Origin: Eutreptiella sp. 'Long Island Sound 2002'
Lineage: Eukaryota; Protista; Euglenida
Assembly (NCBI GenBank): GCA_964036045.1
Contig: OZ038378.1
Coordinates: 167,400,001 to 167,464,000, forward strand
Reading direction: 5' to 3'
DNA length: 64,000 nt
The notes under the pieces are model-generated. The model was not told where the DNA came from. It saw nothing but the letters and a program-made list of their open reading frames with translations, and made no database searches. The position numbers were made by a program, and so were the translations under genes. This document shows positions 1,855 through 54,400 of this stretch, piece by piece (position 1 is the stretch's first letter; each line of letters begins with the position of its first letter).

Positions 1855-2995
1855 TCTTCTTAATGGGCTCTACATCTGTCTTGATAAGCTCCGGATGGTT
1901 AGCATTGTTTCATGATGGGCTCCGGATGGTTAACTTTTTTTCCTGATGGTTTGTGGATGGTTATTATTGTTTCATGATGGGTTGTGGATGGTTAATGTTG
2001 TTTCATGATGCCCGGTGGATGGTTGCTGTTGTTTCCTAATTTGCTTTCAATGGTTACTGTTCTTTCCTCATGGCTCCTGAATGGTTGCTGTGGTTTCGTG
2101 ATTGGCTGTGGACGGTCACTATTGTTTCCTCTTGGGATGTCGATAGTTATTGTTTGTTCCCCGGCGGGCTCCGGATGGTTAATGCTGTATTATGATGGGC
2201 TCTAGTGGGTTGTTGTTGTTTTGTGATGGGCCGTGGATGTTCTGTCGTAATCGGCACCGGATGGGTATTGTTGTTTTCTCATGGGCTCTGGCTGGTTATG
2301 GTTGTTTCTCGATGGGTTGTGGCTGGTTCTTGTTGTATCCTAATGGGTACTGAATGGTTAGTGTTGTTTCTTAATGGGCCCTGGATGGTTGCTGTTGTTT
2401 CCAAGCGGGCTCTGGGCGGTTGCTGTTGATTCGTGATGGGCTCTGGATGGTTGTTGTTTTTTCGTGATGAGCCTTGGTTGGTTAATATTGTTTCCTAATG
2501 GGCTGTGGATAGTTACTATTGTTACCTGATGGGCTCTGAATGGTTGATGTTGTTTTCCAATGGGCTCTGCATGGCTACGGTTGTTCGCTGATTGGCTGTG
2601 GATGGCTTGTGTTGCTTTCTCATGGGCTCTAGATGGTTGCTGTTGCTTCTTGATGGGATGTGGCTGGTTCTCGCTGTATCCTAATGTGTACTGGATGGTT
2701 AGTGTTGTTTGTTAATGGGCTCTGGATGGGTGCTATTGTTTCCTAGCGGGCTGTGGACGGCTGCTGTTGTTTCGCGATGGGCTGTGGATGGTTGCTGTTG
2801 TTTCGTGTCTAGCTCTAAATGGGTAATGTTGCTTTCTACTCGGCTCCGCATGTTTACTATTGTTACCCGATGTGCTTTGAATGGTTGATGTTGCTTGCCC
2901 ATGGGCTCTGGATGATTACGGTTGTTCGCTGATGGGCTCTGGATGGTTTTTGCTGTTTGTGATGGGCTCTGGATGGTTGCTGTTGTTTCCTAATG
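1855..2995 (+). repeat. Degenerate ~31-bp tandem minisatellite (consensus ~TGATGGGCTCTGGATGGTTGCTGTTGTTTCC)
   Basis: GGATGGTT recurs at 1893, 1924, 1955 and 1986 (31-bp period) and continues with drift to about 2990. The hydrophobic ORFs here are by-products of the repeat. Confidence 0.85.
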
Positions 2996-5900: not shown

Positions 5901-7333
5901 ACTGGGTGACATCCAAGAAAAATGAGGAGCACCGGACTTTTTTTGAAAAAGATAGCATCCCATGGGCAAGGTTGAGGTCCACTGAACACTCTCCAAAGGA
6001 CGTTTGGTAGCCTCATTTTCCCTCGGGAGCCCAATGGGAGGCATAGTTATTGCCATACAATTGAGAATTCAAAAGGCAGCCGTTCCAGTTTTGGGCAATC
6101 CATTTTGCACATGCTGCACTTTTCTTTGACTTCATGGAGTTGGCACACAGGGTCAACACTAATATGCATAGAGAGAAACCTGCAGTGAAACCCAAACACA
6201 GTTGGGGGTCACTGTTGGCAGCAATGGGACGAAATCCAAATCTCATCTGGATTTTTGCCAGGCCCACCACCACTGACGGGCAACTTGCCAGCGCATCCAA
6301 CATGCTGAACAGACACAAAGCCAATGCGTGAAAACACAATAATGCATCAGTGGAGAAATCACATACAATGATGCCCTGGTAGAAACATCAGTCATGCAAA
6401 CACAGACCTGGGCTGCTACAGCACTTGTAGCAATTTACAGGATCACACCCCAAACTAGTTTAGGGCTCATTTCCTTCACGAACTCAAAGAAGTCAAAGGC
6501 TTAGTGGTTATACAGGCCGCCGCCGGTCTGGCGAACACAAACCTGCATTCTGTGCCAGGAATACTGGATGTTGAGACAACTGCACGAAAGTGAACATCCA
6601 TTACAGAGAGGGGTAATAAACTTCCTAGATGACAGAGCGTATTCTGTGGTGCGCTAATGTACTGCTCCGTTGACGTTTTGTGCATTAGGGTTACAAGGAT
6701 ATGTGTGAATGCATGCGTGGATATCCATGTGTGACACAGTAAAGCTGCCTGTGAGAAGGGGCGTCATGCAGATCATGGAATACTTGTACATGAGGGGCGT
6801 AGAGGACAACGTCTAAGCTCTTACTGACAGTGCCAACAGATGGACATTGAACCTGACTGACTGAATATCCAGTGGCTCTTTGTGTGTGTTTTTGCTGGGT
6901 CGCTGTGTCACACATGGCTCATGCACACACATGGAACAAACAAGAGGTTTTCGCGGGCCACGCACGGTGCAGGCAGGCCGCGGAGAAAAAAAACGAAAGT
7001 AGATATCGTACCAGAGCCCCCCTCCCCCCCCCTGAATAAACCAAGCACATTGCATGCTTGTCCCATGCCGTGGTTCATTATGTTCCAGACAAGTCGCAAC
7101 CATCGATCCAACTGGGCGGTCAACGGGCGGCAGGTCTGCAGGTGGTTACCAGCTGCGCCGCACGGCCGCAAATCATTTGGAAAAAAAAACCGTACAAACC
7201 GTCCTTTTTTGTGATGTGAAAAATGGGGCATTGTGCGAAGGTGCAGTCTGCTCACTCGCCACCACTTGGTCATCACGGAGAGAAAGCGATGACCAACTCG
7301 TGATGCTGAGCTTGGATGTATCGTGCAGGGCGC

Positions 7334-9445: not shown

Positions 9446-11843
9446 TTTGAGAACTGCGCACCACCTTACAGCATCTGCAAAAAATAGACTTCAAGCAACA
9501 CCTTGACTTAACACGCACATAACAGCAAGTATGTTCGGCTGGGACAAATGAAAGTTTTTGGTGTGCTTGGTTTCACCGGGGTCACTCAAAACATTCAATG
9601 GTTTTCGGATGATTGGCGAGACGAAAGCTTGTCAACTGACCTCGTGTTCTTGGAAGATTGCTAAACCTTACTTGCAGACAAGCAAAAGAAAGCAATCATG
9701 CGTGCGCCACAGTGGTGCTCTTTGCGCGATCTCACCACGCCAGTTGTTATTTGTCCCCATTTGAGGCTTTCTGCAGTGACAATTCTTCAGCTACCATGGC
9801 CTGTGTTTTATCCTGGTTTGGCCATCGCCAAGCTTGAAGACCACTCACCAGGAGACACAACGCGGTTTGACAGTGCATCACTCGGTTTAATTTCAGAACT
9901 TTACTACGCTCAAGACCACCGTACATGTAGCCACATGACACAAGACTGCGGAATCGGGACTTGAAATGTCAACTTGCAGACTGGGGCAGGCTGGCCCAAA
10001 TTTGTGGTAAAGTCGGCATCGGGTGTGGCAGGACGCATAAAGTCAGCTCAAAGATTCCAGGTTCCGGCGAGTGTGAAACAACTCGAAAGCAAATCGAACG
10101 CTCCCTGTGAAGTAAATATTGGCGTCCATGGTGCACCTGAATTATAGTGCAGGTTAGAAAGGCAGAATGAAAGGCATGTGTTGAGATTGAATCCGAAAGC
10201 AATACAGATGCAAACCGAAAGGTACCAAGTGTGAGGTCTATACCAAGTGTGAGGAACCACTTGAGGCTCAAGTTGAGCAGGAGTGAGATTTTCAGAATCG
10301 TTTGTCACGCGCGCGCTGCACTGAAACCAAGGCCTGGAAGTTTTGAGAAAAATCTTTGAGCCGCTCTTAGCATGCAACCTGTGACGGTAGTCTTTTGGTT
10401 CTGATCAAGTTTTTGTACCGGACTCCATTGGGTAAAAAAGAAGACGCTTTCTTACATCATTCTTCCCGTGTGACGGCAACAACATGGCGAGGGGTATATC
10501 GAGCCATGCGCAGCAAACAAACGATAGGAAATCTGATAACGCAAAATACACCACTACACCGTACAAAACTGCCAACACCACTATCCCCTTGCCCCCCGGT
10601 GACTTGTACCATCTACTTGGTAGACACGGGAAAGTGGTCTTTTCGAAAATGGGTCTCAGATTTTTCTGCTCTCGAGCGTATTGTGACCTATTTTCGTAAT
10701 CGGTGAAGCATGCCGGTTCTCAATGAGGCAGCTTGTTTCATTTTTCAACCGAAAACAGCCTTTTTGGGTAATGACATCATCCTTAACATTACCATCCAAA
10801 TAAGCACATAGCTCGTCAAAACATTGATCCCGAAGAAATTTTGAGGTTCCCCATTGATGGCACAATTCGAAGGCAATTTTGTTGACGTTGACACCATTTT
10901 CTTTGTCACAACCATCAGTGTTGGGTTGCGGCACTCTTAGTGTGATGTCTGTTGACATTTATTTGTCCTTTGTCTTTGATATGACGCAGCAATGCAGCAA
11001 GCATTCGGCGTCTGAGAATGGCAAGCGCTGCAACCATTGAGCATCCATGGGCCCTCGACAAGCTACATTCCACGTCATCCTCAGTTGCTTAGTATCCGTT
11101 GCACCCTTGCACGTGTGTGTGCATGTGTGTCGTGTATTCATGTGTGATGTTCTCGTCCCGCACGCATTTTGGGGCCCATTTGACAAAGCATTTGACACGA
11201 TCCCATCATCAAAGTACGGTCTGGATTGCCATAGTAGGGCTTGGGTTGAGGTTAATGCCCCTACTCCTTTATTTCTTTGTGTGCCGCAAAATTTTCCTTG
11301 ATGGTCTGATAAAGTGTTCTTTTTGAGAGTGGGTCTCATGATTTTTTCCCCAGGAATGGCCCTAATGAAAGTGGTTCTTACAATATTTTTTCCCGGGAAT
11401 ACCCCCGGTATAGAGTGCCAGTTGCCGTGCAGTCACGGTGGTGTGCAGTCACGGGGGGTAGAGTACACACGAACACATCGATGAGTGGTTTACTCACCAC
11501 ACGTGATTTGTTGCACAAGGAGGGTGCATGAGTGTGGTGATGTCTTCCGAAAAATTCATCCGGCGAGGAACGATGGCATAAGGTAAAAGCCCTTAGTGTG
11601 TCGGAGAAATTAGTCTTCGGACTAAGGGCCAGCCTTCATGCTTTGTGTGCTCCCGTTACACAAGCCCACCTACGACGCGGGACCTAGCAAGAAAGTCCGC
11701 ATGGTTTGTTTGATTTTCTATGACAATCGGCGCTCCATTTGATTCATTCCTCGTCGGGGCGCTCTTTCCCTAACATCATCACGTGCGGATGTTGTCTAGT
11801 GCAAAGTTTTCTCGGCGATAATTTTCTCCATTTCTAGGTCTTG

Positions 11844-13332
11844 ATGATGCGACGAGCACGCCATGCCGTTTCCAAAGTGGTCCGCCAAGGTCCCTCATAT
11901 CACCGAAGAGTACTCGCATGGGAGTCATTAAGATGCCATTCCACTACGTCCGCCCAAGAGCTAGAGGCGTTTCGCGACAGGGTTCGTGCTGTAGTCACCG
12001 ACCCAAAGCTCAATTTCAAGCAACGACGGTACAACCTTGCCTACTTGGCCGAGAGTGTGTTGCCGTATCCGAATCTGGACCCCAAGACCATGGACCTTCT
12101 TGGGCGCAATGTCATTCATGACCTGTTTGAAGGCCCCGCCCCGTATCGACCACGGTACACGTTGCCGGATTACGCAATTAGTTTGAAAAATGGAAGCGCA
12201 TACCTAGAATTGCCTCCTGCAACCACCCTCGATGAAGCTCTTAGCTCTTTGATGATTTTGTGGCACAACACGCCCACCATAACGGGCTTCCCCGTGTGGA
12301 TTGGGGATATCGACGCCCTTTTGGAACCCTACGTTGCCGACATTCCGGATGACATCCTTCGGCAAAGATTGAAGGTGTTTTGGCGCATGGTGGATCGAAT
12401 GTTCCCCGACGGATTTTGTCATGCGAATATCGGCCCAAAGGACTCCCGTGTCGGCAGAATCATCCTTAGCATTGAAAGAGAGTTGCGGCAGACGGCCCCG
12501 AACTTGACATTGAAAGTAGACCCTCAAGTGACCACCCCCGATTTCATTTTGGACGCCATCAACACGTGTGTTGAGGTGTCGAAGCCGCACTTCGTCAACC
12601 ATCGAATGATGGTGGAAGACCTCGGACCGAATTACGGGGTTGCCAGTTGCTACAACAGTTTGAAAGTCGGTGGCGGTAGTCATACCCTTACCCGCCTCAA
12701 CCTCCGCGCGGCTGCCGACGGGTATGCTGGATCCCCGAGCCAATTTTTGAGCCAAGCGTTACCTGAGTATGTGGAACGCACGTGCGAGGTCATCGCGGCG
12801 CGTGTGCGCTATTTGGTTGAGGAGCAGCAATTTTATGAGCACGACTTCATGGTGAAGGAGGGTTTGCTCACCCTCGATAGATTCTCGGCCATGTTCGGTG
12901 TCGTCGGAGTGGCAGAGTTCGTGGAGCACCTTGGGGTAGGAAAGTATGGACTGGACAAGGAGGCGAACGAGTTTGCACTCGCGACCATCAAGGCAATTCA
13001 CAAGCAACTTGAGGGCATTCATGTGCCATATTGTCAAGGCTTCGGGAACCGGGCGATGTTGCATGCCCAAGCAGGGATAAACATCGATGACGGGATTACT
13101 CCTGGTGCAAGAGTGGCGTTTCAAAACGAACCACAAGGGTTATTGGACCATATTTTGGCCGTTGCCCCTGGACATAAGTGGTTTCCATCGGGGGTGTCTG
13201 ACATTTTCCATTTCGAGGAAACCGTCAAAAACGCTCCGGAGGCGGTGGCACGGGTGTTGCATGGAGGCATGGCGGCAGGCCTTCGGGATTTCACGTTTGA
13301 TGTGCGAGGTGGGGAGTTTGTGCGAGTCACAG
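11844..13332 (+). CDS. yjjI: Exon 1 of a YjjI-YjjW fusion: presequence plus YjjI/DUF3029-family glycyl radical enzyme body
   Basis: Family-like N-terminus VVTDPKLNFKQRRYNLAYLAESVLPYP, GPAPYRPRYTLPDY, conserved Cys loop YGVASCYNSL (Cys269, 12648-12650), RFSAMFGVVGVAE, and GLRDFTFDVRGGEFVRVTG. The donor ACAG|GTAAGC at 13333 falls inside the radical Gly codon. A pyrimidine tract plus AG (ATTTTCTCCATTTCTAG) ends at 11837, just before the ATG at 11844. Confidence 0.92.
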
Positions 13333-14260
13333 GTAAGCCACATACATCCCGAGTCCTCCCGCCTCCTTCTCCCGTGCTTGCCAACTAGCACCTTATGCCG
13401 TCCTACATTCGAGAGAAATTTCATCTGCGTCACGTTGGAGATGCGGCATTCATGTGATGAAGCGCTAGTCCGTGCACATGGATGATATCTCTCGGGCCAA
13501 CGTGTCATCTCTGCCCACGCTTGGAGTATTTTTGCCAAACAGCACGTGCTACACCTGCCGCACCCATAGCCCCCGCATCATTTGAGTTGTGAAAAGGTTG
13601 GGTTGAAGTTCTGGGAGTTAGCGGCTTCAGATTGGAAAGGCCGATGTGCTGCGTAAAGGCGGAGCATGAAGACGCAACGACCGCGCCCAGGAGTTGCATG
13701 AAGAGCTCAGTAAAAGGCCCACGAGCGAAACATAGACCACAGGCTGTAAACGAGCCCAAGGAATCAGCCCATGTGCAGCGAATATCCAAACATGTTTTGG
13801 GCAATGGAGGGGTTAGAACGACGTGGACCCCCTCGAATGTTGGCACCCATTTAGTGAGTAAAGACAACCCCTCTCCTCTCCTCCCATGTGTGTATCGTGA
13901 TCCCACCCCGTAAGCGGACCGTTTTGGGCCGGGACGTGCAATGGTTTGCACAGTAGCCATTGCAAAGACCTGGCAATCAAGCCTGAAAATGAGTGTTATG
14001 CAAACCTCTCACTCAGTGCACGCGATGTACAGAATGTTCAGAAATCATTTGGGTGTGCTGTAGAAACCCAAATAGAACTATACACATGCACAGACACGAG
14101 GTGGCTGGATTTTTGCCTTTTAGTGTTTGTACGTTGGTGATAAGGAACCGAGGTATTGACGTCTGATGTCGAAGGGCTCTCATGAATCTGCCAGGTGCAG
14201 TAAGAGAAATCCTCTCCGTTGCGAGAAAGATTGATTGCGATGCCCGCCCACGTATTGCAG

Positions 14261-14706
14261 GGTACCTGATCCGGCGGGCGGATGCAGAGCAATTTGAAGA
14301 CCGAGGCTCCCGTATCCACAGCGATGTCTTCGGGGCCTACGTGACCCAACTTCGTGGCCTGTTCAACCGTCCAGCGCGTGCGTTGCCCGATGATCCATTC
14401 CAGGGGCTCGTGAGCCACGTCATTCCGTTTAGTGTGGTGGATGGCCCTGGCAGTCGCATGGCCATCTTCCTCCAAGAGTGCAACCTGCGCTGCATCCACT
14501 GTCATAACCCTTCGACCCTTGGGTCATGCGACGGCTGTGGGGTCTGTGCAGAGACGTGTCCCGAGGGGAATCTGCAGGTGAAGAGCAGTGCAGTCCGGGG
14601 CCCATACGTTGAGTGGGACGAGTCGAAATGCCTGCAATGCGGCCTGTGTCTGGCGAGTTGCCGCCGCCTCGGCGATCCGCACGCCCGATGGAGGACAGCC
14701 ACGGAG
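14261..14706 (+). CDS. yjjW: Exon 2 of the fusion: YjjI C-terminal segment running in frame into the YjjW radical-SAM activase N-terminus
   Basis: Acceptor ATTGCAG|GG restores V-T-G-Y. The frame reads [17 protein letters not shown]...[52 protein letters not shown]. It has the CxxxCxxC motif (14479-14502) and ferredoxin-type [12 protein letters not shown] and [11 protein letters not shown]. Donor GAG|GTCCGT at 14707. Confidence 0.92.
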
Positions 14707-14973
14707 GTCCGTCCCCAACCCCCTGCCCGTCCCCCTCACCATTGCTATCCCCACTCAGTGCAAGCCGATCTCCGTCACGCCAACTGCATCCGAGTCCCTT
14801 CATCGTGCGTGACGATCTAACACAATTGGTGTGCGGTAGGTGTACTTCCGTATTCACTTACGGGTCTATTTCCGGTTCTACTTCCGGGTCGACATGCGGG
14901 TTTTGTTTTCCTGTTATTCAGCAACTCAGCGGAACTTGGGCATGCAATGCATGTGACCAACACCTGTTGTCAG

Positions 14974-15303
14974 GTGGTGGATGACATCGCGAAGGGCGCC
15001 GGCATGCTCGATGGAGTGACCATCACTGGGGGAGAGCCCACATTGCAGCCCACATTTGTCGCCGCGGTCTCCTCGATGCTGAAAGCGGACCCCCGGACGC
15101 GAGACCTGCACCGGCTGCTTGACAGCAACGGCGTGGTCCCGCCCGATGTTTGGGACCAGCTTCTGCCGCACGTGGACGGCGTCGCCATCAGCATCAAGGC
15201 AGGCAGTGCCGAAGCGTACGAGCGCGTAACGGGCCGCAAGGATTGTCTTCCGGCGGTCCGGCAAACGCTGCAGTCGCTGCACGAAAGAGGCAAGCTACTG
15301 GAG
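14974..15303 (+). CDS. yjjW: Exon 3 of the fusion: radical-SAM activase core
   Basis: Acceptor TTGTCAG|. Reads VVDDIAKGAGMLDGVTITGGEPTLQ (GGE motif), LLDSNG, LLPHVDGVAISIKA and RGKLLE. Donor GAG|GTCTGT at 15304. Phase 0 at both ends. Confidence 0.9.
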
Positions 15304-18135
15304 GTCTGTGTGCCTGGGTCTTCGTGTTCTTCGTTCCTGAAACAGCCACAAAACGGAGGCTTTCGCAATAAGTTTGGACTGGTCGAGTCTGGTTTCCGCC
15401 ACCCCTCCCCTGACCCCTGGACACGCCATACCGCCCCCCCATCCCCCGCAATCATGACTGGCTCACCGTCGCCACGGCTCTTTTGCCGCCGGCAGAGAAG
15501 CATTGTTTGAGGCCAAATGTGGCCTGGATGGTTGTGGTGGAGGAGATGGGGCGTGTTCCAAAAAGGCCGGTCGGTGACCTCATGCTGCAACTGGTGCTCA
15601 GTGCCTTGTCTTTGGTGTGGCCTGCGTTTGACGTGTTTGTCGGGAATTGTGAGGAGGGAAAGCGCAGGCTTGTGGGTCAGGGTCGAATGTTGGTCCCATA
15701 CCGTGGACGCGTCCACCCCCATCCGGCACCACCAGGCCTCACGTGCAGTCGTTCCCATGACCTGCGGGATCCCTGGCTCAGTCAACCCAAGGCCCCCCTC
15801 CCTCCCTCCCTCGTCTTTCCTTCCACTCCTCTTTGAAGTTGTGTGCCTTTGAGTGTGCCTTTGAGTGGTTGCATTCCAGTGGCTCTTGGTAGGGGGCTGT
15901 GGTAACCAGGGCAAGTCTGCCAAAGGTGCCACCTGCACCTTCGCTTAGCTCACCTGAATTAGGTTTTCCCCCCTCCCTCGCGTTCCCAACCCGCTCCACA
16001 CCAGCACAAAGAAACCCCACCAATCAGCCTGCTCAAAGGTTTTTCAGTGCTGCAGGGGGGGGGGGATTGGGGGGGTCTTTGAGAATTGACACCCCCCCCC
16101 CCTGAGGATATGCCATGAGTGGGTTGGGATTTTTATGTCCAGGGTCCTCAAGGACGGCGGTTTAGTGCATCTTTTTATAGGCCTATCTTGGTCAATTCTG
16201 CAGCCACATTGATTTCTCCATTTTGGGGACATTTTGGGGACAAGGCAGTGGTTATGGACCCATATGATTTCCTCCCACTTTGGGGACGCTCTCACCCACC
16301 AAATTGCAACCCCCCAGAACAGTATGACATGGTAACCTGCCAGCCCTCTGCCTCTCCCCTCCAACTGAAGTCCTGCATGGGTTGTGGGTAATGTGTGTGC
16401 GCCGAGAAGGCCAGGGTTGGGTGGGTGGGTGCCTTGGTTGACCCGGGGGGGCGGATTGGTGGGTGGGTAAGTTCTGAGTGGCTGGGTCCAGTCCCCCCCC
16501 CCCCGCCCACCCGTAGCTAAACAAAGCCTTGAGCCTGCTGCAGTAGATCTGCTTGCCCTTGGCAGGAGTAATGGGGCTGTGATATTGTTTACTTTTCGTT
16601 ACCGTTGGCACACTGCACAGACGAAGCAACAAAAAAACCAGTTGCAAAATGCCTGGACACACTGCACACCGCTGCCGGGTAACACTTGATCTAGAACCCC
16701 CTGGCCCTATGTTACATTTCCCAAATTATTGGTGGTGAGCACGCTTCTGTCTTGGGAAACACTTTGTGTGAAGCATGCTGGTGCCCGCATGGGAGGGACG
16801 CCAAGGGCAGAAGCAGCGCTTGTGAGCAGAGGGACAACTTTCCCACTATCACCGAGGAACAGTACTTTTCCACTGTGGTTTCGAACAAGCAATGTAAATA
16901 ATTTCAACAAAAACCTAATCAGTACGTACACCCAGAAGTACTAACTGGCAAATTTACTCAGCCTTCATAGCAACCCCCCAAAAAACAATACGCGCCACTG
17001 TGGGATTAGGTGGTGGCCTCCCCTACCATCAGGCAGTCACGGAGGAAGGTTCTACTGCAGGGGTTTAGGGATTGAGGCATCGTGAGCCCTCTGTGCAGCA
17101 GGTGGACGTGGTTGTAGCATACACGAGAGCTGCCTGCCCCTCCGCCTCCACATGGAGACCCAAAACTTTGTTTGCTGATGTCGGATTTGAAATGGAGGAG
17201 GTGCCTTGCCTTCAAAGGGACACCGCCCCCCCAAAAAGCCTGATATATGAATAATCCAGTCCACCCTGGAAAGGAGCTGTGAACCCGTTGGCCTGCTTCA
17301 GCAGATCCGGTCTGCCTTCAACAGAAGTCACAATGCAACCTGAGCAAAAGGGGAAATGTATTCTTGGTGAACAGCTGTTAAAACACTATTTGGATTCCAC
17401 TTGTACGTCCTTATGCCCAGCACTGTAGACTACTTGCACATGTGTTCTTATGGTCGCATGTTTCTCTATCCCCCCAAACCAACCCCCCCGAGTAAACCGT
17501 GATTCCGACACCGGATCCGCGTGGCCAAAGAGGGTCAGCAGCAATGCAAGCGCAGGAACAGGCCCTAAGCCATGGAAAACACTCTTCCTAATCTGTATTC
17601 CATGGCCCCTAGATAGAGCAGAGCAAGACATTGGCGTGGAAGGCAGGAACCTGCTGTCCCAAGGTAGTAGAGGCCCGTTCCATTGGAGGGAGGGACGCAC
17701 CAATAAGCTCACCAAAAGGCCTGACCAGCGGGATACACCAGAGTACTGACACTGTGACTAATATTGATGAACAATCGGCAGTGAAGGTCGTGTGGCAGGG
17801 GCGACTGGAGCAAACACGTGGACAAACCGGACCCATTTGCAGCCCCAGCCCCCCCCCCCCCCTGAGGCGATTAGGTGTCGGAAACGTCCATAAACTGCAA
17901 CTGCGAGTCAAGCAATGTGTGGTGGAGTAGTGGTGTCAAGCCCGAGTTTGGCTCTCAATTTGAAAGCGAACAAGAAGATAAACCAGGGTGCAGGGGAAGA
18001 GGGGAGGAGTGCAGGGAGCACCCCGTCGCTGCCTTTGTTGGGTTGTAAATTGGGGCCCCCTTCCCAGAAGCGTGAGGCTTGCCGACGCGGCTATGGCAAG
18101 CCCTACCCCTCAGAACGCCCCCATTCGCCTTCCAG

Positions 18136-26546: not shown

Positions 26547-28556
26547 AATTTCCAAACTGATTTCCTTTTGGATATCTTGGCCACTCGCAGTCATCAAATA
26601 TCTTATGTAAAGCATGTTTTAGACCCTTTTTATGTGTCCCCCCCCCCTATTTCGGTGTTTTTGGATGCGGGCAAGGGCCTAGGGCACAATCTGCTTGTGC
26701 AATTTTCCACCCTCTGCGGCACAAAAATGGAATTTCCGAAACCGATTTTCTTGATATTCTGACCATTTACAATGATCAAACCAGCTGTCCCCACAGGCGT
26801 CCACTTGTGGACATGCATGACCTGCATGAAGTTTGTGGTTATGGTTTTAGTGGTTGTACATACGCTAGGCTCACGCCTAACTGCGTCTGCTTTGTTCATA
26901 GCTCATATGCGAACTTTGGACTCATGTGGCGCCGGAACACAAAAAAAAATTACAATGATCAAATATCTTATGTAAAGCATGTTTTAGACCCTGTTCATAT
27001 GTTTTTCATGCGCCTGAACCCGACTCGGCCCACCTCCCCGCCCCTGGGGTCGGGGGCTCCGGAACGACTTTGTGACTGATTGACTGACTGTGCTCCCTCT
27101 TCCAGGTGCCTTGCTGATAGGCAATAGAATTGCTGTTTCAGGGTTTTCAGTGGCAATTTCCAAAAAGCAAAATAGCTGTTCTAACAAGGAAGGTCCTTGT
27201 CGAAAATCTTTTGTGACAAAATGTTTTTTCCAATTAAAACCTGTTTTCAACAAAAAGTTTTTTCAACAAAAAAAACCCCCACAAACCTTTTTTCAGCAAA
27301 AAAAATTTTCAACACAACTTTTTTTCCAACAAAAAGTTTCTAGGAAAATTGCTTTCCTAACAAAATTTTCTAACAAAAATCCTTTTTGCAATCCAAAATT
27401 TTTTCAACAAAAATATTTTCCAACAAAGAATTTCTTTTAAAAACAAATTTCTTTGCAACGATTTTTTTTTTCAAATTTCAAATTTCACCGAAAATTCTTT
27501 TGCATCTAACGGTATACCCAAATGCTGCCAAAATGGCACTTGGCTGGCCAACTGGCCGGAACTGATTTTTTCAACTCATGTGTGCGGCGCAACGTGCAAA
27601 AATGTTTCCGTTTTCGCCGGGAGCGAGTTTGGGTGGATTCGACTCGCTTAAAAATCCGACGTTTCCCCACCAGAGTCCACCCCTGAGGAGACCCCCACTG
27701 CATGCATTTCTTCCATGGGCTCCAAACCCGCTGTTGCTTGGACAAGGTGTCCTTCAGAGGAACCCCCCCCACCAACCCAGGTATAGACACATTTGCTGCC
27801 ACCAAGGCAATCCACTTGTCACAACCCATTGCATTTTGACATTCTATTGCCTCACCCTGCTTGCGTCCAAGAACACGTTCCTAACATATTTGGAGTGGTC
27901 TTGTGCATGGCCAAACCGGGTTCTGGTGCTGTTGCAGAGGGAAGGGGATGAATCGGAGGGGGCTGAGTACAGCACGGACGTTAGTGACACCCGCTTGCGC
28001 CCGCATTTTTTGGACGGCTTAAGTGCCGGCATGAGCCAGACGTGAACAAAGCATTGCAGGGGGGTTAATCAAAAGTAATCCTGAAGGAGCCTAAAGGCCC
28101 TGAGACTGACCTGAAACCCAATCAAAGGGAGCGCCTCACAGTGTGTTGCTGGGCAGCATGGACATTGGTGGCCGCGCCTCACGGCGCCTTGCGGGACAAC
28201 CCGGACAATGTTTGTTGCGCCTTCACCACGTCGAGACATGTTGTACTGTTGTGGATGCAGCGGCCATCGCTGATTTGTGGCCCAGCAACAGTGGGTGTCA
28301 GTTCTGTCACTGTCAACCATGGTCTTTGGTGAATAGTGTTTGCCCTTGTGGGTGTGGTGGTCCTTGCGAGTCTGCGCCAGTGCCCTTGCGAGTCTGCGCC
28401 GGTGCCCCCTGGAGCAAAGCAAGCCGATGCGTCACTGCTCTGAAACCTGGGTCGAACCCCTGGAACCAGTCCCATGGCACTCTGGTACAGCCCCTCCCTG
28501 AGGCTGTACCGGAGGTGGGGGGTCGATGACGAGAACGTATCGAAGACACACACACT

Positions 28557-28557
<1 letters not shown>

Positions 28558-28599
<42 letters not shown>
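28558..28599 (+). repeat. (AG)21 microsatellite ending 8 nt upstream of the ART start codon
   Basis: Direct reading of the sequence. Confidence 0.95.
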
Positions 28600-28601
<2 letters not shown>

Positions 28602-28606
28602 CCGCA

Positions 28607-29791
28607 ATGATGTCGGAAGCCCTCGCTCTTGTGGCTCACCTGCGCGCTGCCCGTGTGCCTGTCCGCTCCGCGTATCCGCAGTGGGCTTTTGCCATGTCCG
28701 AAGACGCCGGCCCCGGCGCTGACAAGGTCGCGGCACCAGGCCGCCTCATTTTCGAGCCCCTCCAGCAGCTCCGCCAAGCGTGGGACGCGCAGAAGGCGGA
28801 CCACCACGTCGGCTGGTGCGAGATGGTGTCGTCGCTGAGCACGTTCGCGCGCGACGTGGTGACGTGGATCGCGCTCCAGCCCAACCCGGGGGCCTACATG
28901 AAGCCGGCCCTGGTCGCGAAGACCCTCAGGGACTGCGAGCAGCTCCTGGACACCCTCGCCGTCGTGCAGCACCGCCTGTTCGGCCGCCACGCGGACAACC
29001 CCGCGGCGCCCGCGCGGAGCGCGGACGGCGTTCTGCACGCGGACGACGGTATTTTCCCGCTCTTTGACGGGGCCGTGCCCACGGCCCTGCGGGACGCGCT
29101 CGATCTGGCGGCCGAAGGCGCCAAGCACCCGGAGGGCAGCGGTGGCCAGCCGGCCCCCCTGTCGGTAGACGACGTCCTGGCGGCGGTGCGGGACCGGCCC
29201 TGCCCCGCCATCACCGGCTACACCCTCGAGACCCCGCTGTACCTCATGTGCAATCGGGCCATGCGCGAGTGGAAGCACCGCCCGGTGGCGTTCGAGGAGA
29301 CGTGGCGGCCGTTCGCGCACTGCCTCGACCGCGAGCTGCGGGGGCTGCCAGGGTACGAGGGCGACGCGTACCGCGCGGTGGGCTTCCGTGTGCCGCGGGA
29401 CCTGTACGCGGAAGGGGCCGTGGTGACGTGGAACCAGCCCTCCAGCGCCAGTGAGGACGCCCGAGTGGCGCGGGAGAATCTCAGCGCAGGCGACGCCGGA
29501 GGCCGTGACTGCCCTCAGGGGACGCTGCTGGTTCTCCGGTCGGAGGGCGGCGGGCGGGCAGTGGGCAAGCACTCGGCATACCCCGAGGAGAAGGAGGTGC
29601 TGTTCCCCGCCGGGACGCAGTTCCAGGTGCTGCGGCGGGGGACGGAGGGGCTCAAGCAGCGGCTGGGGGCCGCCATGCAGTGCTCGCTCGCGGACGTCGA
29701 TGTGTACGAGTTGCGGGAGGTTGAGCTGCTGGACGGTTGGAGGGGACTGAAACGGTACGTGGACCCGGTGCGCAACGCAGAGCTACTGCAG
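28607..29791 (+). CDS. Exon 1 of an ADP-ribosyltransferase-ankyrin protein: helical N-domain plus R-S-E (ARTC-type) mono-ART domain
   Basis: YTLETPLYLMCNRAMR, AYRAV (catalytic Arg), WNQPSSAS (S-x-S) and SAYPEEKEVLFPAGTQFQV (E-x-E). Strong GC3 coding bias ends at the putative donor CTGCAG|GTGGTG (29792). The in-frame ATG at 28607 follows the (AG)n tract. Confidence 0.85.
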
Positions 29792-31060
29792 GTGGTGTCC
29801 CCTCGGCGCCCTTCCCATCGGCAATCGTGCGATCGCACCTCCAACCATCCCTCCAACGAGATTCCGGCCGGTCGAGAGATGAGAGCATACGGCACACCTG
29901 TGCGTCCAGGTTCAAACCCAAGTTCAGAGAAACTGCCCCGTCGGACTCTGTTGAGCACCTAAGGTCGAGGGTGCGAACCCGAGTATTGACCTCGTTGGTT
30001 GGGACCACGCCTCGTCGCTGCACTGGCGTGTCGGTGAGTGGTCGGCCGGGACTTTGGCAGGAGTCAATTTTGTGTGGAAAATTTCGTTTTTCAGATTGGG
30101 GCCAAAATTTTACCCACGAATTTTTTTGAGCGCAATTTGGAACAGGCAAAGGCAAAAAGGTGTGCTTCATATATAGAAGAGCCCTGGCACAAGTGATGTG
30201 CTGTATAAAACAAAGAGGCAGCCTCATCACACCCCTTCCCGGAGGCATTACCCCCCTCAATATGGAGAGCCAACCCCAGGCCTACGCCTATGGCTTGCAG
30301 AGAAAGAGCCATTCCATACGGATGTTAGAGGTGCTTCACCATCTACTCCTAAGGACATCGCCTCCACAAGGGCAAGAGCAAGGCTCCGCCAGCGGGGCGG
30401 TAGAACTGGGTCCAAGCGCAGGTGTTCCGATGCTGAAGTTGTTCTCTTTTGTCGAAGTCCACGGGCCCAAGGGAGGTGCGTTGTCCAAACACCACAAGGT
30501 GCTGTGTGCAATCTGTGTTCTCCGCAAGGTCAGAGAAGGAAGCCACCCTGCACACCCACATTAGGCACCGGGTGGACGGTTTGGAGGGGGGGTGTTGCAA
30601 GCACTGGGGAACACACGTTCTTGGGATTTGCCTTGGCATCCATGCATGTGGTCCATGGTGGGTGCGACCACCCCGAACTTGGCTTGCAATCCGGGCAATA
30701 CAGGCTGTGCTGGGCAGCAAGCGTAGCCTAGTGCGGGCCTCTACGTGTGTCGTTTAGCGCGATTCTGAGGGCTTGGCAAACACAAACAGTTGGGGGCTGC
30801 CTGTCGAGTGGCCTGGCAACTGGATTTCTAGCCACACGACGCGAGGCGAACCCTATCTTGGCCTTCGCCTGATCTTCGATGAATCGGGCCAGAATGGTGC
30901 CAACACGGCCCAAGGGCGGGCAAAGACGAGGCCTGGGTGGACGCAGGCTCACGTTGGTGCTGTTGGTTCATGGGGCCAGGGGTGCAAGCAAAGCCACGCA
31001 GTGTTGCATGTGCCGCGTTGCACGCGCTGCTGGCGCCCCAGCGCAGGTTTCGGGCTGCAG

Positions 31061-31393
31061 GTCGTGGAGAACGCGCCCACACGGAAGGGCTTCCGGCGTG
31101 GAGCCTCGGACGACGTGACCGCGACGCCGCTGACTACTCTGCTGCGGGCGACGAGAGATGATGGGTCGACGACGACGGTGCTGCACCTGGCGGCCTCCGT
31201 GGAGGACAACCTGCCGGCGGTGCAGCTCGTTTGTGCTCGCCTCGCCCCGAACGAGGGGCAGCGAAGGGACGGTGCGGGTCGGACTGCCCTGGACGTGACC
31301 AAGAGCGGGCCCACGGCGGTGTACCTGGCCAAGCGGTTTCCCGTGCTGCAATCCCCTGACGATGCGTACCGCATGATTCCATGGATTTGCGAG
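31061..31393 (+). CDS. Exon 2 of the ART-ankyrin gene (ankyrin-like segment)
   Basis: GC-rich coding-like segment between acceptor GGCTGCAG| and donor GAG|GTGCGT, both phase 0. Contains TTVLHLAAS and RDGAGRTALDV ankyrin signatures. Confidence 0.65.
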
Positions 31394-32160
31394 GTGCGTG
31401 GGCCGATCCCCCGCGGGAAAGGGGCATGCGGCGCAAACAGGCCAACGGGGTGGCATGTGGGGGGCAGCAACAGGGCCATACGGACCTGTGCCGTAGTCCT
31501 GCGTCCGCAGTGATTGCGTTGTGAGGATCAGAGGATGAAAACACCGTCGCCGACGTCAACCGGCGCGCTCCTGCACGACAATGTGGAGCGCTGGAGGGAA
31601 CACACAAACCCGTCTCAAATGTTCGATGCACAGCTGCTCTACTTCAAGCGAATTTGATGGCCGCAAAGGCGCAGCATGCTGTGGCTGAACACTAGGAACC
31701 ACGGTAGCAATCGGTTGCCTCATTGCTTGCGCTGTTCGGTTTCCCACCCCAGAAGCCCCGCTACAGTCCACAGCACGTGTGGTAGCCTCGGCTTGGGTTC
31801 CGGGCGCCCTCCGATTGTTGTTGACCCCCCACAGCGGCGCCATGCATGCCTGACCCCGTGCGAGGCGCGAGGTGCACCCAGGCAATGAACGCGAACAGGG
31901 TCGCGCTGTAGTGAGCAAACTCTGTGTAACATGTGCCTCAGGGTACCGAGCTCCTCACCACCCGAAACATCAACTGAGGCGTGATCCTGTGTCACTCAGT
32001 AGCATCGTTGTTCTCACCCATGAATTCCCGATGGGTGCTTCCATCCGGTTCTCCAGCAATCTGTGGCCACGGGGCCTCCATTGCAAACTGCAGTGGCGAG
32101 ACCTACACACACTGCCCCTTTCCCACAGGGAGGACACACAGTAAGAGCCAGTGGTCGGGT

Positions 32161-32606
<446 letters not shown>

Positions 32607-33120
32607 GTCACTCAGCCATCGCCGCAGTATCCAGGCAGAATTGGGCTGTCCAGCAGACCCGGGCGGACTTCTCCATAGCAAGGAGGTATATCGGGGCAGG
32701 CCCGGGCGCCCGGGTCGTAAGGGGGAAGCCTGGTGGCACTCTGTCCGCGCGGACATACACGGCACTCTTTCCCACGGATACCCGAATGCAACGCCAATCC
32801 GGTAACGTCCACCTGCACTAAGCTCAAGTGAAACCGCCTGCAGCGGCCAGAGAGCCAAACAAGCACCCAAATCCCTGTTTTCCATCCCCAACTCCATCTC
32901 CAGTCAATTCTATGATGCAAAAAACTTTTCTGCCACCCAAATCAATGGTGTCACCCGGATCAGCTATGATTTCCAGTCAGTTCTGCAGACGTGCATGCCC
33001 CCTGCATTAATGGCCACCATTTGCTGCACGGTGGGGCATAAGCCATGAAGGCCTGTAAGGCCCGTTCCATCGCATGAGGCCCACTGTTATGTGGATCCGA
33101 ACGTTGCCTCATTCTCACAG

Positions 33121-34371
33121 GCCGGTCAAGTTGACCTACTCCGGGTCTACGCATTGGGGCAAGATGAGGGTATCTGTTGCCTTGCGCTGCGGACCGCCAG
33201 CAAGTACGGACGCAAGGAATGCATCGAGTTCTTGGTGCAGGAGTGCAACGCCGACGTCAACCGTGCCTCAGAAGATGGCACTACTGCGTTGATAGAAGCA
33301 ACACAAAACGGACAACAGGCGTGCCTTGAGTTTCTGGTGCGTGAGTGCGACGCCGACGTCAATCACGCCGCCAACGACGGGTACACTGCATTGATCTTTG
33401 CAGCGCTCAATGGGCACCGAGGGTGCATGGAGTTCTTGGTGCGGCACTGCGAGGTCGATGTCAACCACGCAGATAATGATGGCTACACTGCGTTGATGAC
33501 AGCGACGTACAGCGGACATCGGGAGTGCGTGGAGTTCTTGACCCGCGAGTGCAACGCCGATGTCGGCCTCGCCTCCAACGACGGCCACACCGCGTTGATC
33601 TTGGCCGCGCGGAGTGGACACCGGGGCTGCCTCGAGTTTCTTGTGCGGGAGTGCCAGGCGGATGTTAACAGCGTCCTCAACGATGGCTACACGGCGTTGA
33701 TGCTGGCGACCCACGGCGGACACCGGGGCTGCGTGGAGTTCTTGGGGCGCGAGTGCGGCGCCGACGTCAACCGCGTCGCACACGATGGCTACACGGCGTT
33801 GATTTTGGCGGCGACCGGGCACCAGGACTGCCTGAAGTTCTTGGTGCAGGAGTGCAAGGCGGATGTCAACCACACCATCAACGACGGCTACACGGCGCTG
33901 ATGATGGCCACGCACAGCGGGCACCAGGGCTGCGTGGAGTTGTTGGTGCGTGAGTGTGGCGCGGACGTCAACCGCGCCAACAACGCCGGCCACACAGCGT
34001 TGATTCTGGCCGCACAAAACGGACATCGGGGCTGCATTGAGTTGTTCGTGCATGAGGGCCAGGCCGATGTCAACCATGCGGCCCATGATGGGTGCACTGC
34101 GCTGATGAGAGCTGCGCTGAACGGACACCAGGGGTGCCTCGAGTTTTTGGTGCGGGAGTGCAAGGCCGACGTCAACCATGCTGACAACGATGGGTATACC
34201 GCGCTGATGGAAGCGGCACAAAATGGACACCAGGGGTGCATTGAGTTTTTGACTTGGGAGTGCAAGGCCGATGTCAACCACGCTGCGTTTGATGGGTATA
34301 CGGCGTTGATGATCGCGGAAGAAAATGGGCACCATGAATGTGTTGCACTGCTGCAATCTGCCATGGCGCAG
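33121..34371 (+). CDS. Exon 3 of the ART-ankyrin gene: ~12 tandem ankyrin repeats (34-aa period)
   Basis: Consensus GYTALxxAAxxGHxGCxEFLVRECxADVNxxxND is repeated about 12 times. Acceptor TTCTCACAG| at 33120 gives the in-frame join WICE|AGQVDLLR. Putative donor GCAG|GTATCG at 34372; otherwise the ORF runs to a stop at 34488. Confidence 0.9.
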
Positions 34372-34877
34372 GTATCGGCAGGGTTTTGGCTTGTGCGTGA
34401 AATGTTGCGGTTGTCAGAAGTCACCCCTGCCCCCCTCCCCCCCCCGCATTGGATGTGTGCACCCTCAACACAATCAACCAAACACTAAGGTGGATCATAC
34501 CGGATGGAGGCCCGGCCGTGGGAATGGTCTAAAGTTGGACCTGGGCCCAACCAGAGGGGTTGGCAAGTGCCCCAGCGGAAGGTGGCTTGAAGGCCTACAT
34601 TACCACGGCCTTGGGCAAGGAGGTGGCAAGGAAGTGTGCAGCTTTCCAGAAACAGAAGCCAAGAGAGGTGCACCAATATCATGAGCACATTGCGGGCGTG
34701 TGGGATAGCAACCAACCACACCCGGTGCTTAGGGAGCGAGAGCAAGTGTCGGTGGTAGTGGTAGGGACGGAGGAGGGGTGAGCAAAAAATGGTGTGCCCG
34801 GTGGTTGGGAACGGGAGGAGCACACGTGGAAAAGGAAGCCACAAGTGCAACAACAACACCGGGTGTGACAATAGCAC

Positions 34878-49380: not shown

Positions 49381-50361
49381 ACGGCCCCTGCGGTGAGTTG
49401 GTGAGTGCGGTTGCGGTGAGCTTACACGCCTGATATATGCTAAAATATCAATGGAGACCTTGAAAAGTATCCTATTTGCACCTTCCAAATTCAAAGCAGT
49501 GGGATAGACTCCAAGAAATCTCAGTTTTTTGGGCATGAAAAAATTTTCGCACATTTTTTTTGTACCCCCCCCTCCCCCCCTCCTGGGGTACCCCCCGAAA
49601 AAAAAAGCCACGGTGGTACCAGGAATTTTTTTCCTGCCGCCCCCCTGACGTGCATCTGGCGCAGATTGCAGCCTCGGTTGCAAGTTCATTGCAGACTTTG
49701 GTAGGTTGATTTTCTCGAGATTTTAGGGACGGATTTTGCTGTAAACTTCAGGGTGGTTGGTTTGGAATCCAAATAAACGATCCTAGCATTTTAAGCAAAA
49801 CTTATCACAGAAATTTGGAGTAAATTGGCCTGCAAATGAGAGGCACACTAGTGACCACACATATGGATGCCACCCACTTCGCCACACACACACACACCGT
49901 CGTATGAGGAGTTGCCAGCACACGTGCCCTAGGAACACGGCGAATGATCGTTCCCTGAATGACACACACATCACATCAACATTGAGCAATTGCCAGTCAG
50001 GTGTGAAAGATCGTCTGCACTACTGCGTGAAGGAATGACACATGTTATGCCAGCATCATGCATGGACTTCTGGTTTGCTCAGTTATTGAGTGCACCTATG
50101 CTGTACATAAATGGACCTTCAGCATCCGGGGGTTCTCCTGCGTACACTCAATGGCACCTTGAGCATCAGGAACAAAAAAAAAATTGGCCTACAAACGAGA
50201 GGCACCGCAAGCCATCAATCGCACATCCTCAGGTGCAATGGACTTAGCTGCACCAAACAACAGCCATGCCACCTGCATGTCACACAGGTGGGAAGCAATG
50301 TGACCAAGAGGGGGTTTGTTGCTTCAACCAACAGCTTCTACCCTGGATTTGTCTTGTTTTG

Positions 50362-50387
50362 ACTTTCTCAGTGTCTATTTTTTTTTC
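50362..50387 (+). other. Genomic spliced-leader relic upstream of NIF3
   Basis: ACTTTCTCAGTGTCTATTTTTTTTTC versus the Euglena SL as I recall it, ACTTTCTGAGTGTCTATTTTTTTTCG. There is one substitution in the first 16 nt, then a T9 run. It ends 18 nt before the ATG. Confidence 0.8.
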
Positions 50388-50404
50388 TTTCGTGTTTTGC
50401 CTTC

Positions 50405-51463
50405 ATGAGTGTCAAGGCATTCCTCGCTGCAATGGGGCGAATTGCTCCGTTGCATTTGGCTGAGAAATGGGACAACGTCGGACTTTTGGTGGAGCCTACG
50501 ACGCCACGGCCCCTGAAACGGATATTTCTGACGAATGATCTCACGGAGCCGGTGATGCAAGAGGCCATCGATTGGAAAGCTGACTGTGTCATCGCATACC
50601 ATCCCCCAATCTTTGTCCCCTTGAAAAGGCTGACGCAAAAGGACACCAAACAACGCATCGTCATCCAGGCCATTGAGCATGGGATCGCCATTTACTCCCC
50701 CCACACCGCAGCAGACACTGCGTCTATGGGTGTAAACGAGTGGCTCATCGAGGGTTTGGGCGTTGGGACAACGGAGTTCAAGCCCATCGTTGTCAAGTGT
50801 GCAATGCCCAACCACAAACTGGTGGTGACCGGCTTACCAGCCGATGCCCCGGTTTTGGAAAAGATGCTTAGTGATGCCGGGGCTACGATCGATAGCTGCT
50901 ACACCCAACAGCCGTGGGGTGTGCCAAAGGATAGTGCCACATCCAAAGTGCGCTTTGAAGCAGTGGTCACAGACCAACAAAAGACCGAGATTCTCGGGGC
51001 GATCGGCCCGTTGCGGGCCACTGTCGATCTCTATCCGCTCGCAGCGGAGCCCTTGGCCGTGGGATGTGGCCGTGTGGCCGCGTTTCAGACTCCCATACGA
51101 TTGTCGGAGGTCGTGCAGCGGATCAAAGCTCATTTGGGGCTTGCCTTCGTCCGTGTGGCGCACGCAGAGGGGCGCCCAGGGCAGACAGTGGAGGAAGACC
51201 CTCAAATTCGATCTGTGGGGGTGTGCGCAGGCTCCGGGGCTGATTGGTTAAAGACGTGTGATGCAGACCTTGTGTGGACGGGGGAGCTGAGCCATCACGA
51301 CGTGTTGGCCTGCGTGGCCAGTGGCAAGTGCGTGGTCTTGTGCGACCACAGCAATACTGAGAGGGGTTGGCTGAGGGATCTGGCACAGCGGCTAAAGACG
51401 GAGTTGGCTGACATTGAGACAAAGTGCTCGTCGGTGGATGCGGACCCTCTGAAGGTGGTGTAA
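50405..51463 (+). CDS. NIF3: NIF3/YbgI-family (NIF3L1-like) dinuclear metal-binding protein; intronless, 352 aa
   Basis: APLHLAEKWDNVGLLVEP, LTNDLTEPVMQEA, IAYHPPIF, YSPHTAAD, VGVCAGSG, TGELSHHD and DHSNTERG are family motifs with the His/Asp/Glu metal ligands intact. Confidence 0.95.
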   Translation: MSVKAFLAAMGRIAPLHLAEKWDNVGLLVEPTTPRPLKRIFLTNDLTEPVMQEAIDWKADCVIAYHPPIFVPLKRLTQKDTKQRIVIQAIEHGIAIYSPHTAADTASMGVNEWLIEGLGVGTTEFKPIVVKCAMPNHKLVVTGLPADAPVLEKMLSDAGATIDSCYTQQPWGVPKDSATSKVRFEAVVTDQQKTEILGAIGPLRATVDLYPLAAEPLAVGCGRVAAFQTPIRLSEVVQRIKAHLGLAFVRVAHAEGRPGQTVEEDPQIRSVGVCAGSGADWLKTCDADLVWTGELSHHDVLACVASGKCVVLCDHSNTERGWLRDLAQRLKTELADIETKCSSVDADPLKVV

Positions 51464-54400
51464 TTGAACAATGGTTTTGGCATATCGGACTTCCACGTGA
51501 TATGCCTGGGGCACATCATTTCTAGAGTGCAAAGATGTGCATAATCCGGGCTCCCCCCCAACGTTTTCTTCTTCATCCCTCATTCCCCCTGCTGCCGGCA
51601 CGGGGAAACTCGGAAATTCAGAGGGGCACATTGAGGGCAAATGGGTTCCTTGACCGATGGATCCGCCGCTGCATCGATTTCAACAACTTGACAATGGCAC
51701 TTGATTGTCGGCATTGCGGTTGCCCTCGTGCCCAGAGGCATATATTGGCGTTGCTGACGCAGACCTTCGTAAGGTCACGTCGCACATAGCACTTCATACA
51801 AACTGCAAACCTCCGTTCCCATCCAATCTCTTGCACCCAAACCCTTGAGTTGAAACGACATAGACATGAGGGCAGCTTTGCTCAATGACAATTCCCACAC
51901 ATGTGCTGTGCTGTCATTTTTCTAGCCACCAACGGATAGCTCGGCCCCGGCAGTTTGTAGACCTCACCCCACTCTGATTTTTCGTTCACCCCTTGTGGTG
52001 CTTACGAGGGAAGATAAAGAGCTGGCCAAAGGCTGGAGATTGCTTTCGTGTCACACACGTGCAGCATTTTCGTTGTTTGCGCTCTGGGGAGCCCAATGCG
52101 GGAGGCCCATGTCAGCCATTTGAGTTATCCCCACTATGGGCTGCCCCTCACTTTTGCAATGGGTCAAGGGCGTAACTGTCGGAGTACGCCTGCACCTGCG
52201 CCTGCCCTCCTCCCCCAGGCGGCAATTTGGGGAGGGGAAAGAACGCACCCCCCCCCCCCCCCGCCCAACATCTACACATATTTTAAAAGGGTTCAATGAT
52301 CCATGCAAAGTGGCGATCATTGTGAGGCATATCTCTCTGGGACATTCAGTTTATGCCAACACGGAGCAAATTCACATTTTCCCCGGTTTTTCTCAACTTT
52401 TAGTCCAATGCACCAAAATGTCGTTACCTTGGGGGGGGGGTATGTGTATGCTTTTCGAAATCTGTGAGAAAAGGCCATTTCAGAAATGTATGGGTTGGGG
52501 GGGGGTAGGTGGTCACAGTTTTGCGCATAGAGCTGTACAAGGGAGGACACACAGGGCACAGGCAATGGTCCAGGGATCACTCATTATTCCGAATCCGACT
52601 CATTGTCATCGTTGCCCCTTTCTGCAGGGGCCGGGGCTCCATTGGGGCACACATCCCCGTGCTTGTGACTGGGAACATATTTCTTCAGTTTTTCCCAATC
52701 CTGCAGCCTGCGTGGCTTCACTGGTACCCACCCTGTGTTCAGGGGCATGGCCCACAGGCCGTCAGTTGTGAGGTCCACATTTCGCTGGTGCTCCTCGTGG
52801 TCACATGCAGGTTGCTGCGAACCACCTGTACGAGGCTTTTTTGCGGGGCTAGGGGTCTTCATGCGACTAACCTGCACCCAGGTAGCACCCCCAGAGCGTG
52901 CTCTTTTGCGAGTCAAAGGTTGTTGCGGTGCATCCGGGTATGCAACAGCACGTGCCGTGAATTTGTATGCGGACATGGTGGCTGTCTGTTGACAAAAACA
53001 GCCAGCAAGCAACACAGGCACTGTCCAAAAAAGACAAAAATCTCAAACATACTGTCAGTACAACATGCAGACCCGGGTGTTCCAAATAGCCCTTTTCAAG
53101 GGCTTTCCGAATATACCCCACATACCCCCCCCTTTGGGACACTCAGCGGGCACAAACGAGGCAACAATCACGGCGATCCCTGAAAACGATCCGTGTTGGC
53201 ATATTCCTGAACGTCCCAGAGAGATATATGTTGTGACCCAGAGGAGGTAATGACAAGAGAATGACGCAAGCCTCCAACAGGTACATGACACAAGCGAGCA
53301 TATTATGACAGAAAGCCGAAAGGCGTGGCACCGAGAGCATGCATATGCAATGAGTAGATTACACAGCTAGTGAACAGAGTAGGTCCACCTGGTGACACCG
53401 GAACTCGTGTGTATGCGGCATGTGGGATTGTAAGCCCTACTTCTTGATCCGGGCTGTTTTCTAAGAGCTCACTGTAAACTTGATGGACAGTTTGAGTTGT
53501 GGAAAAAAGAGATATCCGTATGAGATTTTCGTCTGGACATCTCAAAAGGTTGCAATGCAACCCCTCAAATGATCGCAGTGCCAACTACAAGGAAACCCAT
53601 GCAGTGGAGTTCACGTTCTATGGCCACAGTAATGATGCAACCGCCTTTCCCCAGTGTTGCTGGACTTTCTTGTCTCAACGCCTGCAAAAACAAAAGTTGC
53701 GCTGTGTGCGCTCTGCATACAAAGGCCCCACATATCCACTCAACTCCGTGCAATGAGGCAACAGCTTGTTGCCAAGAATGGCGTTTTTCCATTTGCATGA
53801 TCATGGCAGTGCGCATTTAAATGCTTCTTGTTTGAGTCGCCATATGAGTCTCTGGAGGGGGATGTGAGGAGGTTGGAGGCATTGTGTTTTCAGTGCCTGT
53901 TGTGTTATACAGCTGCACGTCCTCTGACGCACTAGTGACAGCAAGCGGGCTTGGTAGAGCCAATTTCTCGAATTTTGCATAACATTGAGTGCTGAAACTT
54001 TGTAAATTCTTCATTGAACACCAAATCTATCAGTCTATATAACTGGTATGCGAAGCGATGCTGTTTTATTATTGGCCTAAAAGAAGGAGGATTTTCAAAT
54101 TCTACTGCCTTTGCATTCATACCCAGGTGCCATTAGCAAATTGAAGGCCGCAAGTTTGGGAATGTCATTGCCAAATCATCATTGAGTGATACTCATAGGG
54201 TCTCTTGGTCCCGTGCTGGTAGGTTTGGCTGTTGTAGGCGGACAAATTCCTCTGGTGCCATTGGTGCCATGAGGTCCGTGAGCAGGCTTCTGCGGTCGGG
54301 GACATGGTTGGGTGCAATGGAGGTGGGCTGAAAGCAGGGATTGTTATTGCTGGCTGTTGTTGTGGGCGGTGTTTGTGCGGTTGGAGGGTAGACTCTTGTT

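Follow-up and report, generated by a model that had tools for sequence, protein, structure and literature searches.

An intron-free NIF3 gene behind a genomic spliced-leader relic in Eutreptiella: a probable retrogene from a trans-spliced mRNA

In a 64,000-nucleotide stretch of Eutreptiella DNA (hereafter the window), we found a worn copy of the spliced leader (SL) encoded in genomic DNA just before a single, intron-free NIF3 open reading frame (ORF), as the original prediction from this sequence had claimed. From 50362 to ∼51957, the locus is very probably a processed NIF3 gene that arose from an SL-trans-spliced mRNA, is trans-spliced again at an AG within the old leader and has a sibling copy on another contig, C7. 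The idea of a functional retrogene made from a trans-spliced mRNA is supported by a homology boundary that falls on the first base of the SL, by the intact ORF and by one contig in which the gene has been re-spliced.

The relic starts at window position 50362 on the plus strand, 43 bases upstream of the NIF3 start codon. Its first 26 bases (50362-50387, plus strand) were the only match to the SL in the window at up to three mismatches, and none of 100 shuffled sequences gave a match. To the species' own SL we assign the canonical 26-mer ACTTTCTGAGTGTCTATTTTTTTTCG, which occurs as 2,588 exact copies in the assembly (G000; 2.28 Gb in 2,317 contigs). In 984 of these, a GTAT donor and conserved downstream sequence follow, marking them as SL RNA genes, and the identical 26-mer is given as the SL of E. 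gracilis (PMC6242988) and has been used as an SL primer (PMC5654406). The claim that the relic is this 26-mer with one mismatch was right about the G-to-C change at position 8 but understated the wear at the 3' end: the relic spans 31 nt, and, by comparison with the published E. gracilis SL, its T-run counts 9 rather than 8 and some four extra bases precede the terminal CG. From the end of the 26-mer to the ATG there are 17 nt rather than the 18 nt first given. A pyrimidine tract in front of the acceptor AG is formed by the 3' end of the insertion-site DNA (50322-50361) together with the first eight bases of the relic. High-copy repeats flank the locus at 49976-50163 and 52326-52400, where contig word depth is 2,500-8,900 compared with ∼35 for unique DNA. 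The features of the locus are listed in Table 1.

Table 1. Features of the NIF3 locus in window coordinates.
Feature	Position	Strand	Evidence or remarks
Insertion-site DNA, T/C-rich at its 3' end	50322..50361	+	Single-copy in the genome; unrelated to the DNA flanking the C7 copy
SL relic, worn, 31 nt	50362..50392	+	ACTTTCTCAG, TGTCTA, T-run of 9, CTTTCG; also in an ENA contig record
AG inside the relic, present trans-splice acceptor (one contig)	50370..50371	+	Exon then from 50372
Remaining 5' UTR of the parent mRNA, TGTTTTGCCTTC	50393..50404	+	Common to the C7 copy
NIF3/YbgI-family CDS, intact, intron-free, 1059 nt, 352 aa plus stop	50405..51463	+	Pfam, TIGR00486, PDB 2gx8
3' UTR-derived part of the retrocopy	51464..51957	+	85% identity to the C7 copy over the 3' UTR

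Protein and Pfam HMM searches of the 2.28-Gb assembly detected one other NIF3 locus, on contig C7 (L032). This copy is also intron-free and headed by an SL, here with the canonical G (ACGTTCTGAGTGTCTAGTTTTTTT, then GTGTTTTGCC), and it is broken by three deletions (26, 1 and 8 nt), three insertions (3, 80 and 1 nt) and a pair of in-frame stops. BLAST alignment of the two copies showed 86-88% identity from 50362, the first base of the SL, to ∼51957, which lies ∼495 bases past the stop codon; the window copy has ∼27 extra bases at 51899-51925. On both sides, the flanks of the two copies are mutually unrelated. As homology begins at SL base 1 between unrelated flanks, the two loci would be separate reverse-transcribed copies of one trans-spliced mRNA. 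The SL is joined to TGTTTTGCC in both copies, and because the window DNA just before TGTTTTGCC is CG, not AG, a trans-spliced mRNA of the window gene itself cannot have been the source of the C7 copy. The simplest reading of the alignments is therefore that the NIF3 copies of the window and of C7 are sibling retrocopies that go back to two independent insertions. An SL/UTR junction identical in both copies could also stem from a single insertion, with the two loci being DNA-level duplicates, for example by segmental duplication. We regard this as improbable, as the homology begins precisely with SL base 1 and gives out in the 3' UTR region, limits that are rare for DNA duplication, and as flank similarity is absent although BLAST easily detects 86% identity.

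The 80-nt insertion of the C7 pseudogene (L032:2239-2327; G000:C7, about 94332771-94332859) runs from GT to AG and would preserve the frame if removed. A retained parental intron was nevertheless ruled out for it, as it belongs to a family of ∼82-86 nt repeats that counts at least 40 members of 88-95% identity (89 candidates at first look). A GACAG direct repeat flanks the insert, which suggests a miniature mobile element.

The product of the window gene matched the whole Pfam NIF3 profile PF01784 (1-256 of 256; E 7.6e-64; 216.2 bits against a cut-off of 23.4), scored 160.9 bits with TIGR00486 (Nif3-like dinuclear metal centre protein), above the curated cut-off of 130.55, and aligned to the NIF3-related protein PDB 2gx8 with E 5e-26. 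One ORF spans the full Pfam profile, leaving the CDS without introns, and the intact frame that had been predicted was borne out by 352 uninterrupted residues. In its full-length match and in its inserted middle domain, present as in 2gx8, the protein is like the NIF3/YbgI/NIF3L1 dinuclear-metal proteins. It may be unlike them in one ligand. The five ligands of the dinuclear metal centre we take to be His, His, Asp, His and Glu, from the E. coli YbgI structure. With this list, the alignment to 2gx8 showed four ligand positions kept, namely His66, the Asp of HTAAD and the His and Glu of DHSNTE, whereas Tyr65 stands in place of the HH pair's first His (AYHPP, residues 64-68). The expectation that all metal ligands are present went too far.

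Between the window copy and the C7 pseudogene, dN/dS is 0.29 at a dS of 0.21, which indicates purifying selection on at least one lineage, presumably that of the intact window copy. An intron-containing parent, whose existence the original prediction had raised, did not turn up: in the whole 2.28-Gb assembly, protein and Pfam HMM searches found NIF3 in two places only, the window and the C7 pseudogene, which is itself intron-free. The parent NIF3 has presumably been lost or is unassembled, and the window copy is apparently, to judge from the sequence, the sole working NIF3 of the genome. As the assembly holds no intron-bearing NIF3, the window copy would now serve as the NIF3 gene. An intron-bearing parent is not required by the definition of an SL-relic retrogene used for dinoflagellates. 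One might instead see in the window copy a dead or dying processed pseudogene, with the true NIF3 missing from an assembly that, at 2,317 contigs, may be incomplete; the Tyr in the HH metal motif would fit such decay. This we think unlikely in view of the unbroken 352-aa ORF, which scores above a curated equivalog cut-off, of a dN/dS that speaks against a dying pseudogene, of the existence of a transcript contig (run X1, probably cDNA) and of the lack of any other working NIF3 match in the genome. An exact-protein look-up matched one ENA record and gave no independent sign of expression. Run X8, labelled as a different organism, contains low-depth NIF3 segments identical to window 50475-51173, none of them across the relic junction.

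Elsewhere in the window, there is a calpain-type protease ORF (7334-9445, minus strand), a YjjI-like glycyl-radical enzyme followed by Fer4/radical-SAM pieces (11841-15510, plus strand) and an ART domain with a long ankyrin array (28526-34488, plus strand). The YjjI-like and ART/ankyrin genes are each split into separate ORFs on the same strand, consistent with introns. The kilobase introns that had been ascribed to other genes of the window are plausible from these ORFs; the YjjI-like ORF, for instance, stops at 13388, and its Fer4/radical-SAM part follows from 14182 in the same orientation.

The junction between upstream DNA, relic and gene is present in genomic sequence. None of the three refutations named beforehand held: the species' SL is not unrelated to the relic, the segment is no SL RNA gene, and genomic contigs span it. 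Among the Logan contigs on which our run evidence is based, DNA contigs of runs X5 (record 4) and X7 (record 11) bridged it from 50094 to 50438 with no differences, contig depth was even (about 33-35) across the gene and its unique flanks, and an ENA contig record has the identical SL/UTR/NIF3 junction. The two runs and the ENA contig may come from the same sample as the assembly, so that they exclude a stitching error with less than full independence. Shared source material of this kind is the most that can be said for the relic being an assembly or cDNA-contamination artefact, in which a transcript was stitched into the genome, and direct support for it is lacking. Such an artefact is very improbable, given contigs of two runs that cross the upstream junction at single-copy depth without a difference, a relic that differs from the live SL as expected for old DNA, and thousands of other relics spread over all chromosomes. 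Another possibility, a variant SL RNA gene lying in front of NIF3 by chance, is refuted by the sequence. C-variant SL RNA genes do occur in the assembly (four, each with a GTA donor; examples are at L007, L020 and L026), but true SL RNA genes read CG followed by GTATATACTCGCTCC. In the window, 12 nt of UTR lead from the relic to the NIF3 ATG, neither a GT donor nor the conserved SL intron is present, and the same SL-UTR-CDS fusion recurs in the C7 copy.

Transcripts of this gene had been predicted to carry a new SL spliced to part of the relic, and we observed this in one contig of run X1, probably cDNA, at a depth of 2.7. This 346-nt contig matched 50379-50704 with no differences, extending into the CDS, and the match is preceded by 20 letters, TCTATTTCTTTTCG then TGTCTA, which represent the 3' end of an SL joined directly after the internal AG of the relic. 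The contig has a T-run of T8 where the genome has T9. Its exact SL/relic junction is absent from genomic DNA, and its SL belongs to a variant with an unusual C in the T-run, TTTCTTTT, a class with 9 SL RNA genes. Run X1 dates from 2013 and its contigs total 3.9 Mb; that it is RNA is a guess, for which we note that 3.9 Mb is too small to hit the locus by chance if the run were DNA of a 2.3-Gb genome, so that the run is probably cDNA. Fossil tandems consisting of an SL 3' end plus TGTCTA-T8 are found at 69 other loci, a few of them three deep, which shows that the same internal AG has been used elsewhere in the genome.

The proposal that the CAG left by the G-to-C change may act as the new acceptor agrees with the use of this AG (in one contig), but the AG is already part of the canonical SL (GAG), so the change was not needed for an acceptor. 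About 50 exact C-variant SL copies are present in the genome, including four SL RNA genes, and the C may thus have come from a rare C-variant SL RNA gene and not from a later mutation. Such an origin and selection for a better acceptor (CAG rather than GAG) are in our view equally possible.

SL copies outside SL RNA genes are not confined to NIF3 and number on the order of 1,500. Sampling 30 canonical copies along C1 gave 8 SL RNA genes; in the other 22, the SL leads into mRNA-like sequences of diverse kinds, of which some have long ORFs and some form multi-copy families. A second set of 30 copies, all of the C variant, comprised 3 SL RNA genes and otherwise relics, with stacked or truncated ones at L011, L016 and L025. 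Several multi-copy families are headed by a complete SL: SL+ATTGACCCTCAG (L055, L056, L062, L064, L069; also L003, L004, L010, L063, L070), SL+GTGTCTTTTTGTCCATGC (L051, L052, L065, L066; also L023, L028) and SL+ATTGCCCCTTCAGATGG (L057, L059), the last with an ORF of >495 aa that has no Pfam match. Either heavy retroposition of transcripts or SL-capped retroelements could account for these families. When five ORFs behind other relics were scanned with Pfam, no reverse transcriptase came up, the only matches being a C-type lectin and one weak FH1 hit.

C-rich or poly-C tracts lie 0-30 nt before many of the other relics (L005, L029, L051, L052, L060, L065, L066) and may point to preferred insertion sites or be peculiar to certain families. 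In at least 8 different DNA contigs, this arrangement showed up as apparent joints between a poly-C of the window (52247-52266, joint ∼52266) and the SL at 50362; in front of the NIF3 relic, such a tract is absent. SL RNA genes proper form tandem arrays with a 1,303-bp period on C2 (G000:C2:188591368-188625068) as well as large subterminal arrays with irregular spacing of ∼1.6-60 kb in the first 1.7 Mb of C2 and the first 0.5 Mb of C1; an SL copy with A at position 8 lies in the array region of C1. Minor variants among the SL RNA genes are those with C at position 8 (four genes) and with TTTCTTTT in the T-run (nine genes).

For the NIF3 locus, we propose the following sequence of events. A mature NIF3 mRNA, SL-trans-spliced and intron-free, would have been reverse-transcribed, and the cDNA would have been inserted into chromosome 1 with the 26-nt leader carried along. 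The same mRNA species would have been inserted independently on C7, where the copy has since decayed. The window copy would be transcribed from upstream DNA, and a new SL would be added at the AG within the old one, giving an mRNA that consists of a fresh SL plus the 3' two-thirds of the relic, as in the one contig described above. At neither NIF3 copy did we find a poly(A) remnant (no A-run of ≥5 at the 3' end) or a target-site duplication (no flanking direct repeat of ≥7 bases), and a genome search with both single-copy flanks for an empty insertion site returned only the locus itself. With these three traces missing, we infer the integration route, and likewise the reverse transcription and the enzyme responsible, the loss of the parent and the transcription start site. 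Both copies are old (dS 0.21), and short tails and duplications may have decayed.

Taken beyond this locus, the data tip us slightly towards the view that this euglenid recycles mRNAs on a large scale, with the relic acting as a portable acceptor and the NIF3 retrocopy having replaced its parent, and that it represents a second independent origin outside dinoflagellates. This view builds on ∼1,500 or more relics, the 69 stacked loci and the SL-headed multi-copy families. If it is true, a relic, with its pyrimidine run and AG, would make a retrocopy expressible wherever it is inserted in transcribed DNA, which would offer retrocopies in trans-splicing organisms a route by which to escape their 'dead on arrival' fate. 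For euglenids, mRNA recycling on a large scale is as yet undescribed in the literature searched. The same process would help explain the growth of a 2.3-Gb genome and the occurrence of intron-free Euglena genes beside neighbours with large introns. SL relics also date and mark retrogenes without reliance on intron loss, a use made of them so far in dinoflagellates and for a few Paulinella genes. For annotation they are a warning, as genome-encoded SL copies can confound both cDNA work with SL primers and the search for 5' ends by means of the SL. We found no report of SL relics or SL-marked retrogenes in euglenids in the full-text literature searched, which includes few of the subscription journals, and the papers on the draft and the chromosome-level E. 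gracilis genomes are silent on SL relics.

Compared with known systems, the NIF3 locus shares with the classical LINE-mediated processed genes of animals and plants the lack of introns, the new location and boundaries that correspond to mRNA ends. In contrast to these, a poly(A) remnant and a target-site duplication went undetected, and the 5' end is marked by an SL. In Paulinella micropora, an SL within 100 bp upstream of genes has been taken as a sign of reverse-transcribed mRNA, with 11 candidates of which 6 were verified (PMC9311404); here, there are ∼1,500 non-gene SL copies, and the NIF3 locus has evidence from both a paralogue boundary and a transcript. The recycling of mRNAs in dinoflagellates, with DinoSL relics at retrogenes (Slamovits and Keeling 2008; Song et al. 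2017; reviewed in PMC6050394), is matched in the genomic SL before the CDS, in renewed trans-splicing at an AG of the relic, in stacked truncated SLs and in the genome-wide extent. It differs in that Euglenozoa are not alveolates and the SL found here is unrelated, and the NIF3 case adds sibling retrocopies and the apparent loss of the parent. Overall, the NIF3 locus is a new lineage for a known mechanism and one of well over a thousand instances in this genome.
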